Assembly: GCA_965112735.1 (NCBI GenBank)
Contig: OZ218953.1
Span: 62,001-126,000 of the forward strand
DNA from: Phaeosaccion multiseriatum
Taxonomy: Eukaryota; Protista; Ochrophyta, other classes
DNA length: 64,000 nt
Direction: 5' to 3'
Positions 185 to 10,100 of this stretch are shown piece by piece (position 1 is the first letter of the stretch; each line of letters begins with the position of its first letter). Made by a program: the position numbers and the translations under genes. Under the pieces are notes generated by a model, which made no database searches, was not told the origin of the DNA, and saw nothing but the letters and a program-made list of their open reading frames with translations.

Positions 185-1058
185 CTATGCCGTCGCCGCT
201 CTCTCTTGGTGTTGGCCCCCATCCTCCAAAGCCGCCACTCGCTTCTCCAGCGCTGCGATGGTCACCTGAGTTTGAGGGGGGCAGAGGGAGCCAGGGGCGG
301 ACTAAATGAAATTCGTGGGACGGAAACAAAGGAGGGGGGGGGGAGGAACGCACCTGCTGCTCCTTGACGGCCTCGACGAGCAGGCTTGTCAGCGTCGCGT
401 ACTGCACGCCGAGATGCCCCTGCAGGCAGGCGGAGGGGAAAGGAGGAAAGGCCTGTGAGTCTTCGTCTAGTCAAGAGGGGAATGCAGCCACAGCGCACAC
501 GCGCTATTGCCACTTGCCTCGTCGTCTACCTCCGCCACAAGCTCGGGCACGACTTGCTGGACCTCCTGGGCAATGAGGCCGTACTTTAGCGCAGTGCTGG
601 AGGAGGGCGCGTCGGAGTTCCACAGGTACGTCACCCCTCGAAGGGCACACACCTTCTCCAGGGCCCCCTCCACGGCCTTCACGTCCTTCTTCCACCTCGA
701 GTCCGAGTAAGTAAAAACAGAATCGGCCAAGTACCCAGCGCCTGTGTGGAGAGGGGGGAGGGGGGATGTTAGGGTCAAACAAGCGAGACAAGCGACACTG
801 GACTGGCTAAGCCTGGTCCGGCAGAAGGGACTCACCAGCTGAGCTTATCGTGAACATAGCCGTATCCCCTGTGTCCACGAGGCTCAACAGATTGGCAGAT
901 TGGGTTGCGTGTCCTTTGATGTAGAGCGGAATATCGGTGGCTGCGCTGGGCTCGATGGCAATCGTGCCATGGCTCACCACAGTCCCAACCGCTGCTTCAG
1001 AGCCATGTTGTAGCAAACAAGCCACCAGCAGGCAGAGTGTCAATGGTGCGAGCCACAT
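185..1058 (-). CDS. Secreted protein with peptidase S74 / intramolecular chaperone auto-processing (ICA) domain and C-terminal coiled coil (~197 aa, 4 exons)
   Basis: Exons 1058-836, 741-518, 419-354, 265-185 splice in frame (594 nt; GT-AG, GC-AG, GT-AG). Signal-peptide-like MWLAPLTLCLLVACLLQHGSEA; S74 hallmarks YSDSRWKKDV..ALEKVCALRGVTYLW..YGLIAQEVQQVVPELV..GVQYATLTSLLVEAVKEQQ..IAALEKRVAALE. Confidence 0.85.
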
Positions 1059-2550
1059 GTCAACCTTTTCCTTCTTTCGCGGAAAGGATATCTTGCTCGA
1101 ACGTTACATTAGTTGCCCTTCCTGAAACTTCAAACTCTCGCCAAGGCTCCTCTGCCCGACATGTCGGACATGTCGAGGCGACATGCCTATGAGCTGCCCG
1201 TCCGCCGTCACTACTCTGGCCACTGCGCGATCTCCCCTGTACGCCACGGGCCGTTGCGGCAGCGAGGTCCTTGGGCGCCATCGTGTTCATAGGGCTGAGG
1301 TAGAGAGAGAGAGAGAGAGAGAGAGGGCGGGGAGGAAGCGCTTGTCCGACGACCGCACGACACCGAACAGCCGAGGACAGTCTCCTCCTCCGCCTCCATT
1401 GGGCGGCATGAAAGGAGCTTTCCATGCTCTCTGTGCGGCCGGTGTTCCAGCCGCTGCTCAGCCGCTGCTCTTTCCGCTGAAGGAACTCCACACACGCCAT
1501 TCCCCTCGCATCCGCCTCTCCCACAATGAAGTCCATGTGACGCCGGCATCGGCCAACGCAACACAGCACAACTGCTCCAAATTCTCGTCTTCCGCGTCTT
1601 CCCACCGCGGAGCCCCTCCTCCTCCGTCCTACAGCCCGAGAGGCCACACACCGCCAAGTCTTGGCATTCTTACAAATGCGCCGTTGGCATGGACCCACCG
1701 CGTCATCTCCTCAAACACGCTGCACGCGATATCCAATTGTCGACCACCTGCCGCATACTCTCTCGTGGCCATCTCTGGACACGCCCTCTTGTCTCACGCA
1801 CAACCCACCCCTCTTCTGACAGCAACCCCTGCAACAATACAGGCAGGCAGGCTCATGCCATCTTCCACCGCCCAATCTGCACATTGGCATGCCGCCCCCT
1901 CAAAGCGACAGCTGAGAGGAACAGCGGCGGCGTACCAAGCACGCTTTCTTCATGGTACGAAGTGCCCCTTCCCCACGAAGACGAAAGCCGACTGCTGGCT
2001 CCTGCCTCGCGTTTCTCCTCCTCCTCCTGAGCTGCTCCTTCCCCCTTTCTGCTTGGAATGCTGCCCGACCCGCTCACTGCGGCGGGGAGTGGAAGCGGGG
2101 GGGGGTCCTCTCCGAGCTACCGACAAGCACCTGTAAGCACCCCTTCAACGAGAAGAGTGCGGCCCCTCCCTGTGAGCTTTGCGTTTGCCCATATCCATGG
2201 ACAGCGCCGCTCGAAGTGCCGCCCACCCAATAATGACGCCCTTTGCGTCTGCTCTCTCTCCTCAGACGCCATCTGCAGTGCACAGGCCGATGCTGGGGTG
2301 GGGTGGGGTGGGGCTGATTCGTCTCGCACCCTACTACCAGGCGAGAAGAGGCGTCGGCTCCTTTCCTCTCGCTCAGCCCGCACGAGTCTGAGTGACGAGT
2401 ATCCGTCCACAGGGGCCCAGCCGGTGAGCCCAGCCGGTGAGCCAGTAGGAGGAGTTGATCATCAGCCGGTGAGCCAGTAGGAGGAGTTGATCATCAGGGG
2501 TTGGTGGGCACGAGCAGCCTTCCAGGGCCTTCCAGTGCCGTTCAGTGCCG

Positions 2551-3375
2551 TCAGCGCAGAGCCGCCTGCAGGTCGGGTACGAGGCGCTTCCAAAGCTGTA
2601 AATAGAGCAGGTCCACCACCTCCTCCTTGGCAGCGACCAGCCCCTGCCCGTCAGCCTCGCCTTCCCCGTCTGCTGCCTCTTGCTCCTCTTCATGGCCCCT
2701 GCTCCTGCTGCGCTTGCTGCTCCTGCTGCTCCTGCTGCTCCTGCTGCTCCTGCCCGTGCGGTCCAGCGCTAAGAACTCCTCCACAATGCCGTCCGAAGTG
2801 ATGACGTGCTCTGCCTCCCCCCTCCCCTCCGAGAGAAATTCCGTCGCGGGAGTCACGGGGGGGGGTTGGACAGCCACGCCCACCACCCTCAAGTCAGGAC
2901 CCCCCTCCCCTTCCTTCTCCTCCTCCTCTGCTCCTTGCGCGTCACCCATCGAGACATTCTCTTTAGCACTGGCGTCCTTCAAGAAGGGAATAAAGCTAAC
3001 CCCACTCTCGGCACATAGCAGGCTCGGTGCTGGCGCCTCTCTGGCGGCCTGCAGCGCCTCGGCAGGGGCCTCCCCTCTGGCGCACAAAAAGGTGAAGTGC
3101 TTCTTCCACTCCTCCACGTCAGGCTTCTCGTTGGCGAAAGGGTCGCCAGCCACGAAGCGGTGCCGTGGGATAGTGGTTCTATACTCTCCGTCGTCCTCGT
3201 CTGCTCCCCCCGCCCCCTTTCCCTGCCTCTCCCCGTCCGGTTGCCACAAGTCCTCGTCGTTGGCCAGCAAAGCCAGTCGAGTCTCCCCGGTGGCTCGCTG
3301 CTCGAAGTCCTCCAGCGCGCCCCACCTAGTACACGCGGAGCTGGAAGGGGAAGAAACAGGGCTTCGGTACGCCAT
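2551..3375 (-). CDS. FAM149-like (DUF3719) protein
   Basis: Single ORF from MAYRSP (ATG 3375); motifs EEWKKHFTFLCARG, PDLRVVG, VITSDGIVEEFLALD and KEEVVDLLYLQLW resemble FAM149/DUF3719 conserved blocks. Confidence 0.55.
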   Translation of the reverse strand: MAYRSPVSSPSSSACTRWGALEDFEQRATGETRLALLANDEDLWQPDGERQGKGAGGADEDDGEYRTTIPRHRFVAGDPFANEKPDVEEWKKHFTFLCARGEAPAEALQAAREAPAPSLLCAESGVSFIPFLKDASAKENVSMGDAQGAEEEEKEGEGGPDLRVVGVAVQPPPVTPATEFLSEGRGEAEHVITSDGIVEEFLALDRTGRSSRSSRSSRSSKRSRSRGHEEEQEAADGEGEADGQGLVAAKEEVVDLLYLQLWKRLVPDLQAALR

Positions 3376-3513
3376 TCTCTTGTCGTGGCGAAAACAAAGA
3401 TATCGCACACAGAGGAAAAAGAGAAAAAAGGAGACGCGTTGGTTCTCCACCATGAACTGCTTCGCCCTTCTTTCAATTCTCTCTCGTCCCTTGTCTCGCA
3501 TCTCCCTCTCCAA

Positions 3514-3570
3514 TCTAGAAAGTGGGGGGGGGGGCGAGCCTCAAGTCTAGAAAGTGGGGGGGGGGGGCTC
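3514..3570. repeat. Direct duplication of TCTAGAAAGTG(G)n between two head-to-head genes
   Basis: Two copies of tctagaaagtggggggggggg(g)c in the ~195-bp gap between ATG 3375(-) and ATG 3571(+). Confidence 0.8.
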
Positions 3571-4256
3571 ATGGCAGACCCGCCCGAATCGACTCCTCTC
3601 GATGGCGGTAACGAAGGCGAACCAGCCCTCACAGAAGCAGACCCCTTCCAGGCCTTCCAGGTGAGCAGCAGCAGACAGTTTTCCAGCGTGTATTGCGTCG
3701 AAATGGTAGAATGTGTATGACGCAGCTGCTGCTACTGCTACAGCTGCTGCTGCTGTTGCCTGCCTGCTGTTTGCTCGCCGCCCACCTGCCTGCCCGCCTC
3801 TCCCCAATCAGACGGCCGCCGTCCCCACCGGCGCCCTGGCGAAAGGTGACAACGAGCGGTATCTGCAGGCCCACCCCGAGCTCAAGGTCATGGTGTCCGC
3901 CTTCATGAAGCAAGGTACGGCACGGAACGCCTCTTTCATCCCTCCCTCCTTGCACCCCGGCTCCATACAGGCAGCGCTTAACACACTCTTGCTGCTGCCG
4001 CCTGCCGCTGCCGCTGCTCGAGGTAGCCTTAACGCTTAGGCCCGAGGACACGCGAGCCTTCGCCACGGAGTTTTTCACCTCTCCCACGCTGGAGGCTGAC
4101 GTGAGGCAGCAAATGGCGGAGAGGGGGATGGGAGTGACGAATGACTGGGGAGAGGCGCCGCATGAGCAGCGGGAACGACATGACCCGGGGGGGGAGGCAG
4201 CTGCAGCAGCCGCGGAGGGCTCCGAAAGGGGAGGGAAGCCGAGGAAGCACCATTAA
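3571..4256 (+). CDS. RIIa dimerisation/docking-domain protein, RIIAD1-like (3 exons)
   Basis: Exons 3571-3660, 3812-3914, 4027-4256 join to ..NERYLQAHPELKVMVSAFMKQALTLRPEDTRAFATEFFTSPTL.., matching the RIIAD1-type NExYLxxHPE..F..RPxx..FA.xF pattern. Confidence 0.7.
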
Positions 4257-4928: not shown

Positions 4929-7062
4929 TCACCTCAAGCTCGCCCCCACCTCAGCCAGGCCCCACCCCTCCGCCTCCCCCTCTGTTAGCTTGAAGTCCGC
5001 GTCCATCTCGATGCAGTTGTACATGGCGTAGCGGAGCCGCTCTGCCATGACCGCGTCGCTCGAATAGCGTGGAAGGTTGATGGAGAAGAAGCACGTGTGC
5101 GCCTTGGGCAGCAAGTGGTCTTCGTGAGGGGGGGAGCCTCCGTGCGCCGCTGAGGAGCCCGCCTCGCCCCCTCCCGCCTCTCCCCCCATGGCCATGGCCT
5201 GTATCTTGAAGCGCTGCGCAAAGTCTCTACTGTGCATGGGCAGTCTGCACCGGGCCCACACGAAGCGAAGGAACTGCGCCCTATCGCGGCTCCCGAAGGC
5301 CTTGAGCACCCGCCACAGCGACTGCACGTGTTGGTCCTGCGGGCTGAGGCCGTCGTCGTACTCTGTGTGGGCCTGCAGCAGCTCAAGGTCAATGCCTGGC
5401 CTGCCGCACACCTCGAGCTGCAGCTCCTGCCAAGTGAAGAGGGGCAGCACCGCGAGGGGCACCACCGATGCCAGTCCGTCCCGCACGGCAAAGGCGGCGC
5501 TGTCGCTCTCGTGCAGGCGTGTGTGGAGCAGCGCCGACAGGAAGGACGGCACCTCCGCAGCCGTCACCTGGCGCCGCGCCCCCCCGGGGCACAGCTCCAC
5601 GACCGCTCCGCCGGACAGAGTTGCCGTCCAGCACAGCCCAGACAGGGCCTCGGAGAGCTCCTCCTCCCGCCGTCTGCTGCCATCGCTGCTGCTGCTCTGC
5701 TTCTCCGCCTCGGCGGCCTGCCAGAGGCGCCTGAGCTGTCTGACCACCCCCAGGGTGCCCTCGTCGAAGGAGCCCAAGTCCTTGTCCTCCAGCGCCTCCC
5801 CCACAAGCCCCTTCCACACGATGAGGGGCAGCGGCCATTCCGTCATGACCTTGGTGCGCAGCCCCATGCCCAACACCCGCCCCAGGAAGTTGAACATGTC
5901 CAGACGCAGAGGGCTGTGCCCCCCGGGAGACAGGACGAACATTGCGCTTTGCTCGTCGCCCACACCCTCCACGTAGTTGGGCGTCGGGGTGAGGAGAGGT
6001 AGCACGCAGGCGGCGGGCCTCTTACCCCCGTCCCCGCCCTCCTCCTCCTCATCCTCACCCTCCCCCTCCCCCTCTTCCCATCCCTCCTCCCCCCCCGGGC
6101 CGCCACTTTCAAAGACCCTCTGTGTGGCGGCGAGCTCCACGGCAAGCTGCGTGAACATCTCCCTGTACGGCCCTCCGTAGTCGTCCACGCCCTCCCCGTT
6201 GAACTTGACTTTGAAGGTCCGCCTTTGACCGTCGTCCATGGGGTGCGTGTAGCCGAGGCGCAGCAGGGACGGCGGCAAGTGCTGCAAGCTGTCGTGCAGC
6301 TGTCCGAACAGGGACAGTTGAAGCCTGTCGTCTGCCCTCCTCAGGCCCGTGGCCACCGCCGCCTTGGGCCTGTTGAGCAGCACGTGCGGCAGATCCTCGG
6401 GGTAGTCGTAGTCGTCCTCGGCCTTCTTGGCGTGTGTGGTGGTGGCCCTCACAGCGTGGCGCAGGAGGCGCTGTTTGCTCACGAAAAAGACGCTCCCTCT
6501 TAGCCTGGCGAGCAGCGGCCCCAGACCCGTGTCTGGAGAGTGCCCGTGCAGGGGCGCCCCAGCTGCCACCACGAGCCCTCTTGAAGAGGAAGAGGAAGAG
6601 GAAGAGGAAGAGGAACATGATAAGGAGGAGGGGTGCGCCTCTCCCCAGCCCCATCGGCTTGGCCTGCGGCACACTTGTCCCGACAGCTGCACGCCCTCGG
6701 ACAGGTCGATGAAGGGCAGGATGCTGGCAAGTTGGTGATTCAGCGCCTTGAGCACCGTCACGCGGGCCAGGCACGCCGCCAAGGAGGGCAGAGGCAGTGG
6801 CGCGGGGTCTGAGTCGTCGCTGCTCTCGCCACAGGCCACTGCCAGGGCCGCTTTGACGTGCTGCTGCCTCAAGAGGGCCCGGGCCGTGCGGGGCGAGATG
6901 TTCCACGGACTGACCTGCTGCACGTCGGCATGCTCGTTCAGAGCAGAGACGAGCACGGCGTCCATCTTGGCCGTCCACAGGGGGCAGTCCGCCAGCAGCC
7001 CGAAGGCCACGCCCGCCGCCGCTCGGTCCTCACGCTCCGACGAGGCGGGGGCAGGGGCAGTG

Positions 7063-7107
<45 letters not shown>

Positions 7108-10100
7108 ATCACCAACTGCTGCGGCTGAGGCTCTCCAGCGCTGCTGGTGAAGAGCCCCACGGCCCGACCCTCGCAAATGTCCTGCCAGGGGAAGAACCAC
7201 GCCCCCAGCGACCCGTCCACCGACAACCACAGAGCCCCGTCGAACACGCCCACCACGGACGCGTTGCCCCGGGGGGTGCGCACTCGTGCACCCGCCCGCA
7301 GCCCAAAGGTGCGCTCGCACGCGGCCGCACTCGTGTCGAACTGCAACTCGTAGCCCGAGCACGTCATGGCCCGCACCGTGCGCCCCTCCCTCCACGCCGA
7401 GGCCTCCTCCGCCAGGCCCTCGAGCACCCCGGGGGGCAGCGGAGAGCGCCGTACCATGGCCCGCATCAAGGCAGCGCAGCAAGTGAGGTCCGAAGCGGTG
7501 GTCGAGGAGGGGCTGCCCGACACACACACACCCGCACCGGGGCACGCGAAGGCGCCCCGCACCAGCGAAACGCGCTGTCCCTGGTTGTAAAAAGCCACCG
7601 CGGGGTAGAGCTCGCCGGCCAGCCCCTCGAATGCCACGCCCATGTCAAGCCCGTTCCTGGAGAAGGAGAGCGTGCCTCTGTCCATGTCCAGCGTGAGACC
7701 GATGGTGTCCCCCTGCCCGAAGCGCTCTCCGTAGGACCGCAGCTTGGTGCGCTTGTGGTACAGTGCCCGGTCTCCAATGTAGCCCCAGCCCCACTCATCG
7801 CCCCCCAGGAAGGTGGCGAGGTCGGCTCCCTTGGCCGCCACCCCGAGGAAGAGGTACGCCGTGGGGGATTTGTCCAAGTGCACCTCCCAGTAGTTGCGCC
7901 CCGTCAGGAAGGGCAGGCTGCCCAGCACCGTGCTCCACGCCTCGTTGCTGCCGTACGACGCACTGAGTCCGTCGTGGCTTGACACGAGTACCGAGGGGCC
8001 CGCGTTGAAGGCATCCAGCGTGAACACCACGCCGGCTTCCGTGCGCATAGACACAGTTGGCGACCACTCCGAGTGGCCGGAGGGGCTGAAGGAGGGGTGC
8101 ACGCAGCGCAGTCTGAAGCGGTACGTGTGTAGCGGCACCAGGGACTCGGTCTTGCAGCGCAGCCGCTTGCCTGAGTACACCAGTAGGAAGGAGGCGCCGG
8201 GAGTGCTCGAGGGGGGCGCGCCGGAGGCCTCTCCGAGCTGCTGCACGGCCATCTCCACTTCGTACAGCACCCTCGACGACGCCAACTGTTGCTGCTGCTG
8301 CTGCTGCTGCTCAGCAGGGGCGGCAGGCGGCAGCGTGACCGGCGCCCACGTGAGCGCCAGGGTGCTGTCGGTGGCATACAAGAGCTCCGGGGCAGAGGGC
8401 ACCAAGGAAGACAGGGGCACCACGGAAGCAAGGGGCGTCACCAGCGGAGGCTCCGAGGAAGAGAGGTCCCCTTCCACAGAGGAGAAAGAGTCCCCTCGTG
8501 ACGCCACGCCCCGGCCATTGGCGGTGCGCCAGTCTGTGAGTGCCCCTTGGAGGCGCCCCATGCCCTCGAAGAGCTCCGCCAGCGCCTGGGCGTAGCTCGA
8601 CAGGAACACCACCGAATTCGAGGCCTGGCGACGCTCCAGCACAACGCGCTTGGTCAGGGCAGATCGCAGTAGAGGCACCACGCTGTGCCGCTGAAAGGTC
8701 TCCTCCATCGCGTGCGGAGAGGGCATGCCGGGGGTGATGGTACCGCTGCCCTTCTCCACTAGTTGGTGATTCAGCAGGTGCGCACTCCACTCCGCAGCCA
8801 CGCGACTCAGCAGCCGCATGGATGCCTCTCTAACGAGGGGGTTGGAACCCTTCAGGCAGTGGCATAGGCGGGAGAAGGTGGTTTCCGAGAACATGCTGCC
8901 CGACGCGAGCACCCCCCGGGGGCCGCTGTCGGGCTTGAGCTTCGCTGCGCAGCTCACGAGCAGGTCCATGCCCCACTCCGCCAGGGCCACGTCTTCCTCC
9001 TCCCCTCGTCCAGAGCTTCCAGAGCTTCCGGAACGAGGCAGGGGCAGGGGCAGGCCGGTCGAGGCTCCGGCAGCTTTGTCCAGAGAGTCCAGGCACGCCT
9101 TCGCCAGCGCCGCCGACAGGCACGACTCGTCCTTGTCCTCAACCTCGTGCTGGTCCTCGTGTTGGTGATCCGCCCCCTCCTCCAGCAGCAACATATGGCG
9201 CAGCACGGGTCGCATGACCGCCGCCGCGTCAGGAGGGGCCGCCCCACAAGGCAGCACAGTCACAGCCGTCGCCGCAGAGGGGATGGAGGACCAACTGCTT
9301 GAGCTTCCCCGCAGGGGAGCCACAGGCACGTGCCCGCCTTTAGAGACGAGCACTTTGAGCAGACGCACCATCAAGTTGGCTGTACAGCCGTCGCCAGACC
9401 CCGCCCCTCCCTCCGCCTCGAAGGCCTGTAGGCTCAGGGCCGGAAAGGCAACGTCCGACAGCGGAAGGCCCTTTGAAGGGGGGAGCTCTCCCTCCCGTCC
9501 CTCTCCCCCTCCCTCAGAGGAATCGCACTGCTTGTGCCTGGGCCAGCGCAGGAAGAGGTTGAGTAGCGCGGCACGGCAGTACAGCGTGACGAGGCTCGCC
9601 TCCGTGGCCAGCCACAAGTCGACCACCTGCCCCACACACAGTCCCGACACCTCCGCGCTCACGGCAGACGCTGAGAGCCCCCGGGGTGGCAGTGGAAGGC
9701 CCTCGTAGGCCGCTCGAGGCCCCGCGCCCCGGTGAGAGGGAGAGGGAGAAAGGCCGCCCCCCTTGGGGCAGCCCCCTTCGGCGCAGCCCCCCTCGGGGCA
9801 GTCCCCCTCGGGGCAGGGCGCGGCCGCAGGGGCGTGGCGGGCATGCTCCACCTCCATTGGGAAGAAGTGCTCTGTCACACGGTCACTGCCGCTGCCGCCC
9901 GCCGCCAGTCCTTCGGCCAATATGTTGGTCTCTCTCTGAGGGGTGGAAGAAGAGCAGAGGATGGCGCAGGAGCCACGCATTCATCGTTAGGGAATCGTCA
10001 ACAGGCGACAGACACAGTGTGAGTTTGAGTGTGAGTGTGACCATGTCCACCTCTCTCTCTTACGTGCGGGAAGAACATGTCCGGAGCGGATCCCTGCGTC

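Follow-up and report, generated by a model that had tools for sequence, protein, structure and literature searches.

A stretch of 64,000 nucleotides from the stramenopile alga Phaeosaccion multiseriatum (C4:62001-126000 of an assembly of 67 Mb in 22 contigs; this whole stretch is called the window) contains near its start, on the minus strand, a small gene of four exons, the mini gene, predicted to encode a signal peptide, a single fibre module and a C-terminal Peptidase_S74 (S74, or ICA) domain. With moderate confidence it is regarded as a genuine single-copy nuclear gene encoding a working, secreted and self-cleaving mini-fibre, and it is real and probably functional. The best explanation of its composition is that the coding sequence came from a bacterial or phage fibre gene, which would later have gained three spliceosomal introns, host-like codons and a signal peptide for the endoplasmic reticulum (ER). 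A narrower proposal is put forward tentatively: that the eukaryote took over a complete minimal tail-fibre cassette, secreted as a trimer of chains of about 64 residues and acquired independently of the giant S74 fibres of the same genome. The product would show, in this order, a signal peptide (residues 1-22), the module (about residues 26-74), a short linker strand, the S74 domain from S87 and a short C-terminal coiled coil.

The S74 domain lies in exon 2, which matches the Pfam family Peptidase_S74 (PF13884) with 63.2 bits (E-value 2.7e-17, cut-off 22) over profile positions 1-57 of 58, and which reaches 64.6 bits in a six-frame search of the genome. Exon 2 also matches 40 PHROG families of tail-fibre, baseplate and tail-spike proteins, as well as the solved long-tail-fibre chaperone 6f45_A (E-value 1.6e-5), and a HMMER search of a library of 1.84 billion proteins gives 14,842 matches, of which the best 150 were listed. 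The sequence Y-S-D-S-R-W-K-K, encoded at 709..686, is aligned with SDRRIKK of 6f45_A, and S87, R90 and K92 are all present. Within the S74 family, Ser and Lys form the catalytic dyad and Arg is the oxyanion residue (PMC3742443); the cut is expected between Y86 and S87. The helical region beyond the Pfam core is also present, since exon 3 continues the tail-family profiles, and exon 4 resembles the C-terminal helices of S74 proteins weakly and over short stretches. Thus, both the full S74 domain and the intact SD-x-R-x-K site described in a first-pass annotation of this DNA are found, and of the coiled coil that it described, heptads are seen in exons 3 and 4, but they are short (about three heptads) and weakly supported in exon 4. 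The S74 domain of exon 2 is placed C-terminal to a fibre module that is predicted to be trimeric.

This module occupies most of exon 1. Neither Pfam, PHROGs, NCBIfam nor the GenBank phages contain a significant match to exon 1, its pattern is absent from the bacterial genome contigs, and the ESM Atlas gives weak leads only, with scores of 0.85, all in phage clusters. A pattern scan of IMG/VR found an open reading frame (ORF) of a viral contig with 51% identity over 39 residues, including an identical 12-mer, and the bacterial S74 protein P0010 carries two copies of the module (P0010:380-430 and P0010:758-810). A small alignment of these module sequences led to at least 50 uncultivated viral loci (L031-L080), in which the module spans about 45 residues and has a common core of approximately PL-x-V-KGAASQ(S/T)ANL-QEWQNS-x-GT-x-LA-x-x-x-S-x-G. 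A hidden Markov model (HMM) of 44 distinct viral copies, built without the mini gene and without its closest match, aligns with exon 1 residues 26-74 at 57.4 bits (E-value 2e-16), and the best of 5000 shuffles reaches 11.7 bits under the same model. The family is plainly conserved in sequence among the viruses themselves. The viral ORFs that carry it are long, the median open frame being about 650 residues: some have collagen repeats matching tail-fibre PHROGs, some adjoin an endolysin or a tail-needle-like gene, and in one of the 50 an S74 domain is also found at the end. In P0010, module and S74 occur together in a Gram-negative chromosomal context. The module has no Pfam family and no match at an E-value of 1e-3 or below in 50,697 GenBank phage records, and a longer module query against cultured phages gave weak matches to Gordonia phages only (E-value 0.02).

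By these sequence comparisons, the roughly 50 residues after the leader are a bacterial or viral fibre module and not orphan sequence, so that the gene as a whole encodes a fibre C-terminus in miniature. The first-pass annotation had proposed a module derived from a virus or bacterium; its proposal holds for the S74 domain, which is of bacterial and phage type, and extends to exon 1. The fibre module recurs in conserved form in bacterial fibre proteins and in numerous contigs of uncultivated viruses, and it may deserve cataloguing as a domain. Against solved structures, the module profile matched only the 'QSANLL' repeat of protein A, which was rejected as a chance match, and sequence thus points to no structure.

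Three copies of the 52-residue mature part of exon 1 were modelled as a trimer with interaction prediction scores from aligned errors (ipSAE) of 0.75, 0.84 and 0.84; of three controls, the best gave 0.00. Partner values of the predicted local distance difference test (pLDDT) range from 82 to 90, and at least 90% of the contacts are common to the runs. The contacts resemble those of an intertwined fibre: residues 21-26 (approximately) of one chain meet residues 33-39 of a second. In calibration, which used two copies, 21 of 30 solved homo-pairs and none of 23 single chains attained this ipSAE mark. In the AlphaFold monomer (pLDDT 75.5, predicted template modelling score 0.29), the same part runs as an extended chain with a single hairpin, as would be expected of such a module alone; the confidence of this monomer is too low to support a fold search. 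The mature N-terminal part is therefore predicted to form an intertwined homotrimer. As to the S74-driven trimerisation proposed in the first-pass annotation, it is a homotrimer of the N-terminal part that the models support; the part of about 60 residues described there as beta-rich was checked in part, and shows one hairpin in the monomer together with a confident trimer model.

The gene model agrees with the four-exon eukaryotic gene annotated before: four in-frame exons follow one another on the minus strand from 1058 to 185 (Table 1).

Table 1. Positions in the window of the mini gene, its parts and the next recognisable gene.
Feature	Position	Strand	Remarks
Whole coding region	185..1058	-	4 exons and 3 introns, 594 nt = 197 codons + TAG; read from sequence
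In-frame TAA	1104..1106	-	48 nt before the ATG, limits the N-terminus; open frame 810..1103
Start codon ATG	1058-1056	-	Read from sequence
Exon 1	1058..836	-	Ends with a phase-1 split Gly codon
Signal-peptide-like N-terminus, residues 1-22	993..1058	-	Hydropathy heuristic
Fibre module, residues 26-74	837..983	-	Single copy of an uncatalogued bacterial/viral module, core PL-x-x-KG-x-A-x-QSANL ... SSA; viral HMM
Intron 1	742..835	-	94 nt, GTGAGT..CAG, phase 1, C-rich tract; unique in genome
Exon 2	518..741	-	Strand ahead of the cleavage site and Peptidase_S74 core; PF13884, PHROG and 6f45_A matches
Predicted catalytic stretch S87-D-S-R90-W-K92	689..706	-	Ser-Lys dyad five residues apart, and Arg; 6f45_A alignment
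Intron 2	420..517	-	98 nt, GC donor GAG/GCAAGT..CAG, phase 0; unique in genome
Exon 3	354..419	-	22 residues, S74 helical region continued; PHROG matches colinear with exon 2
Intron 3	266..353	-	88 nt, GTGCGT..CAG, phase 0; unique in genome
Exon 4	185..265	-	26 residues + TAG, short coiled-coil-like heptad helix and C-terminal tail; translation
HECT-SPRY ubiquitin ligase	4929..9980	-	Single ORF of 1683 residues; nearest recognisable upstream neighbour of the mini gene

All three introns show a C-rich acceptor tract. Their lengths of 94, 98 and 88 nt are not divisible by three, and retention of any of them gives a stop or a frameshift. Homology crosses the second junction: exon 3 alone matches the PHROG profiles phrog_18186, phrog_8215 and phrog_11011, colinear with exon 2, which covers positions 898-964 of phrog_8215 and 481-540 of phrog_18186, followed by exon 3 at 965-984 and 543-564, respectively. 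In the retrieved S74 set, exon 3 matches 113 proteins at an E-value below 0.05, and in 89 of them it projects within one residue of the end of exon 2, with a modal offset of -1. For intron 2, a GT donor that lies in frame and 12 nt further upstream is an alternative (intron 529..420); with it, the product would be shorter by four residues. Because of this homologue spacing, and because the profile matches extend to exon 2 residues 72-74, the GC donor is favoured, and either donor could be usable. The S74 open frame contains no ATG, and therefore it would be translated in a eukaryote only once joined to an upstream exon; exon 1 provides the ATG, the donor and the matching phase. The four-exon splice model is thus supported indirectly, by homology across the second junction and by the logic of the frames. 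Elsewhere in the window, the introns of larC (about 118 and 193 nt) are GT..CAG introns with C-rich tracts, in a style like that of the mini gene. An introner origin of the three introns was rejected, each of them being unique in the genome.

The 5' end is not fixed by RNA, and the GC-rich DNA within 1.5 kb upstream contains open frames, so the mini gene might be the 3' end of a larger gene in which upstream exons join and the hydrophobic stretch becomes internal to a bigger fibre or MYRF-like protein. This is very unlikely indeed. Going upstream from the ATG, the frame is closed after 48 nt by the TAA, no pyrimidine-rich acceptor is present in this interval, and the signal-like leader follows the ATG directly. 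No Pfam domain is found in the minus-strand ORFs between the mini gene and the HECT gene (to 4928), and the 64 kb window shows no further fibre-module or S74 signal. The membrane segment of MYRF, moreover, follows the ICA domain and does not precede it. The upstream exon of a MYRF-like protein, which the first-pass annotation held would overturn its own reading, is accordingly not visible.

The leader of the preferred reading, a secreted mini-fibre, was examined with a hydropathy scan. It shows a hydrophobic stretch at residues 2-16 followed by QHGSEA/A, with small residues at -3 and -1, so that the signal peptide annotated before stands as a hydrophobic leader with a fitting cleavage context, read by heuristics. 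With Ala following the predicted leader cleavage, in place of the Phe or other aromatic residue of stramenopile plastid signals, the secretory route appears more likely than the plastid.

The assembled sequence of the mini gene is accurate, since DNA contigs from four sequencing runs are colinear with the assembly over positions 1-1289 and identical to it, with zero differences. The host contig is eukaryotic and GC-rich (63%). The nearest relatives of both halves of the protein are found in bacteria and uncultivated viruses, which would suit a bacterial or phage contamination, a misassembly or an integrated gene of a polinton-like or giant virus. This is extremely improbable, as three spliceosomal-type introns interrupt the homology, the contigs of the four runs cross the locus colinearly, the HECT-SPRY neighbour is eukaryotic with no viral hallmark nearby, and the codon composition is host-like. 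The G+C content at third codon positions (GC3) is 0.72 in the mini gene and 0.73-0.83 in the neighbouring genes. Host-like GC3 and three unique, non-repeated introns argue for a long residence of the mini gene in the host genome.

A paralogue count gives a single copy of the mini gene, and exon 1, with its fibre module, has no other copy in the genome. Three other S74 loci are present on other contigs, in open frames of 2278, 2771 and 20530 residues, and two of these three giant genes show long tandem beta-repeat shafts ending in S74. In the third (C1:5242229-5242417), S74 lies inside an uninterrupted frame of 20,530 residues with Gly/Ser/Thr-rich, fibre-like sequence on both sides. The S74 domains of the giant genes on C11 and C13 are 42-43% identical to that of the mini gene and score about 31 bits, against at least 52.7 bits for all of the 150 best library matches in one uniform phmmer run; the C1 copy is absent from that listing. 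Giant-gene domains scoring below all of these matches suggest a separate acquisition of the mini gene from bacteria or phages, and not the truncation of a giant fibre gene.

With three giant S74 genes in the genome, beta-repeat shafts that end in S74 and a secretory pathway that both kinds of protein would use, the mini gene might alternatively encode an accessory of the giant fibres: a cap, an adaptor or a trans-acting chaperone that co-assembles with them. This is very unlikely. The two kinds of S74 are so distant (42-43% identity, about 31 bits) that mixed trimers are unlikely, S74 domains act in cis, the fibre module is found nowhere else in the genome, and the mini gene is unlinked to the giant genes, which are on other contigs.

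For the separate acquisition preferred here, the best S74 matches give the context. They include P0007, a secreted protein of Bacteroidota type that carries a type IX sorting tail, and P0010, both in bacterial chromosomes, and P0001, on an unclassified metagenomic contig of 65 kb. P0001 (L029, contig Ga0486075_000267, gene 7881-8207) is a complete protein of 108 residues, almost all of it S74, and carries a stretch F-T-Y-S-D-S-R identical to that of the algal gene; its neighbours, which include thioredoxin, P11_C and DUF723, are mostly unannotated. Since P0001 is nearly all S74, stand-alone mini S74 proteins exist outside eukaryotes too. A word search with exon 2 found weak, small S74 proteins only (39-54% identity), and one with exon 1 found nothing. 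Among the 14,842 exon 2 matches, the best 150 listed include no orthologue, none being more than 57% identical, and among the 156 proteins retrieved (the 150 listed and six from the word search) the P0010 cluster alone resembles exon 1. The larC gene was used as a control; its nearest database relatives are brown algae with 53-54% identity. The lack of an orthologue is therefore weak evidence, and in databases without close kin a short secreted protein is easily missed.

Several points weigh against a working mini-fibre. The four runs that contain the locus belong to one sample and consist of unspliced DNA contigs without joints, none of them RNA. No orthologue was found, so that purifying selection is not measurable. 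Exon 1 has a GC3 of 0.59, below that of the other exons. The signal peptide was assigned heuristically, by eye and hydropathy. The viral copies behind the 57.4 bits of the module HMM were gathered by a pattern and by tblastn, both using exon 1 as bait, which somewhat inflates the score. The trimer model covers the exon 1 part alone, and its good score may owe something to solved fibre folds that the predictor has memorised. Finally, no known donor has the module abutting S74: the gap is about 85 residues in P0010 and about 500 in L044, one of the viral loci. The first three points, together with the lack of a paralogue and a mature part without a receptor-binding or enzymatic head, would also suit an unused relic of horizontal transfer, a gene that once worked long enough to gain introns and is now unexpressed or unneeded and not yet decayed. 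Such a relic is nevertheless unlikely: no damage is seen in the four frames, in the six dinucleotides of the splice sites, in the start context, in the hydrophobic leader or at any catalytic residue, and a neutral coding sequence of 594 nt in four exons would be expected to show some lesion.

For the working mini-fibre, the following steps are proposed; tool results stand behind the family assignment and the trimer prediction, and we infer the other steps from the family. The protein would enter the ER, where the signal peptide would be removed. Three S74 domains, with their C-terminal helices, would then associate and align the N-terminal modules, which would become an intertwined trimer. This assembly would position S87, K92 and R90, and each chain would cut itself between Y86 and S87. 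The cut would release a trimer of chains of about 64 residues (A23-Y86) and a separate chaperone trimer of 111-residue chains. The working product is likely to be the small trimer, a secreted or surface knob or joint piece that itself lacks a receptor-binding head. The uses named in the first-pass annotation, as a component of scales, fibres, mastigonemes or extrusomes or as a chaperone of partners in trans, are speculative.

If the gene is expressed and its product cleaves itself, it would be the smallest natural cargo known for an S74 chaperone, and one algal genome would have recruited the assembly chemistry of phage fibres a second time, independently. The trimerise-then-cut device would then be one that spreads easily into eukaryotic secretory biology, and ICA chemistry, known from virion fibres, giant hair fibres and transcription factors, would gain a new use in the maturation of a tiny extracellular trimer. 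With a product of about 200 residues, the mini gene would also be a compact natural test case for the length of upstream fibre needed for ICA folding and cutting. If the gene is silent, it is a well-preserved transfer relic only.

Three other identities were tried and rejected. A MYRF/MrfA-like identity was rejected because exon 1 and the upstream minus-strand ORFs (to 4928) show no NDT80/PhoG-type domain and because no membrane segment follows the ICA domain: exons 3 and 4 encode a polar helix and then the stop, and the sole hydrophobic stretch is N-terminal. A giant fibre gene of the mastigoneme-head type was rejected because there is neither a tandem beta-repeat shaft nor an EGF-type head and the S74 domain is distant (about 31 bits). 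An endogenous viral element was rejected on account of the neighbours, the HECT-SPRY ligase and domainless ORFs, and of the three introns.

Two observations concern the assembly around the mini gene. At window position 3555, the contigs of three of the four DNA runs show, at full depth, one extra G after this base, probably a one-base assembly error. Position 3555 is the point where the overlapping minus-strand ORFs 2551..3513 and 2979..3632 switch frame, and these ORFs may be a single gene. CAG/CTG and GA microsatellites are found at 50-90, 1290-1339 and 2709-2761, where the contigs of every run break or vary in length; a (GA)n tract at about 1305-1325 is within the presumed promoter region of the mini gene.

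Five known systems may be compared with the mini gene. Phage tail-spike and tail-fibre ICA domains, such as those of the K1F endosialidase and 6f45, share with it the PF13884 match, the Ser-x4-Lys dyad with its Arg, the C-terminal position after a trimeric fibre segment and the helical or coiled-coil tail; the trimerise-then-cut mechanism would be common as well. The algal gene differs in being eukaryotic, with three introns and an ER-type leader, in having no virion to attach to, and in its cargo, which is only about 64 residues long and contains no enzymatic or receptor-binding domain. MYRF of animals and MrfA of Dictyostelium are likewise eukaryotic nuclear genes with a phage-type S74/ICA domain, whose products are made at the ER. 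The algal protein, about one fifth of their size, lacks the NDT80-type domain and the membrane segment after the ICA domain, its topology is predicted to be lumenal or secreted, and its upstream part is a fibre module and not a transcription factor.

The giant S74 fibres comprise the three genes of this alga and the alveolate TLP-12 glycofibril candidates, proposed proteins of an environmental triple-beta-helix glycofibril for which an ICA domain is predicted at the end (bioRxiv 10.1101/2025.09.30.679562). They share with the mini gene the secretory route and an ICA domain after a beta-fibre segment, but they contain thousands of residues of tandem repeats, whereas the mini gene has one non-repeated module, no EGF or mastigoneme-type head and an S74 domain that scores about 31 bits to the copies of the alga. 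Polinton-like viruses of most protist groups are reported to carry S74-ended fibres, and those of ochrophytes to lack them (PMC12220804). Phage-like fibre genes with a terminal S74 in protist genomes are thus common to both systems; those of the polinton-like viruses are large and modular and lie in viral elements, whereas the mini gene has introns, host neighbours and no viral genes. Given these two reports, the first-pass annotation is out of date in naming only MYRF and MrfA as characterised carriers among eukaryotes, and eukaryotic S74 use other than that of MYRF is no longer unheard of.

The bacterial S74 fibre proteins P0010 (1605 residues, with two modules and two S74 domains) and P0007 (S74 and a type IX tail) are secreted and belong to the best S74 matches. 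These bacterial proteins show the same two building blocks as the mini gene, fibre module and S74; they are, in contrast, three to eight times longer and intronless, and their gap between module and S74 is of tens of residues or more. What is new in the algal gene is its minimal size, a single non-repeated bacterial or viral module as the sole cargo, and a likely independent origin.

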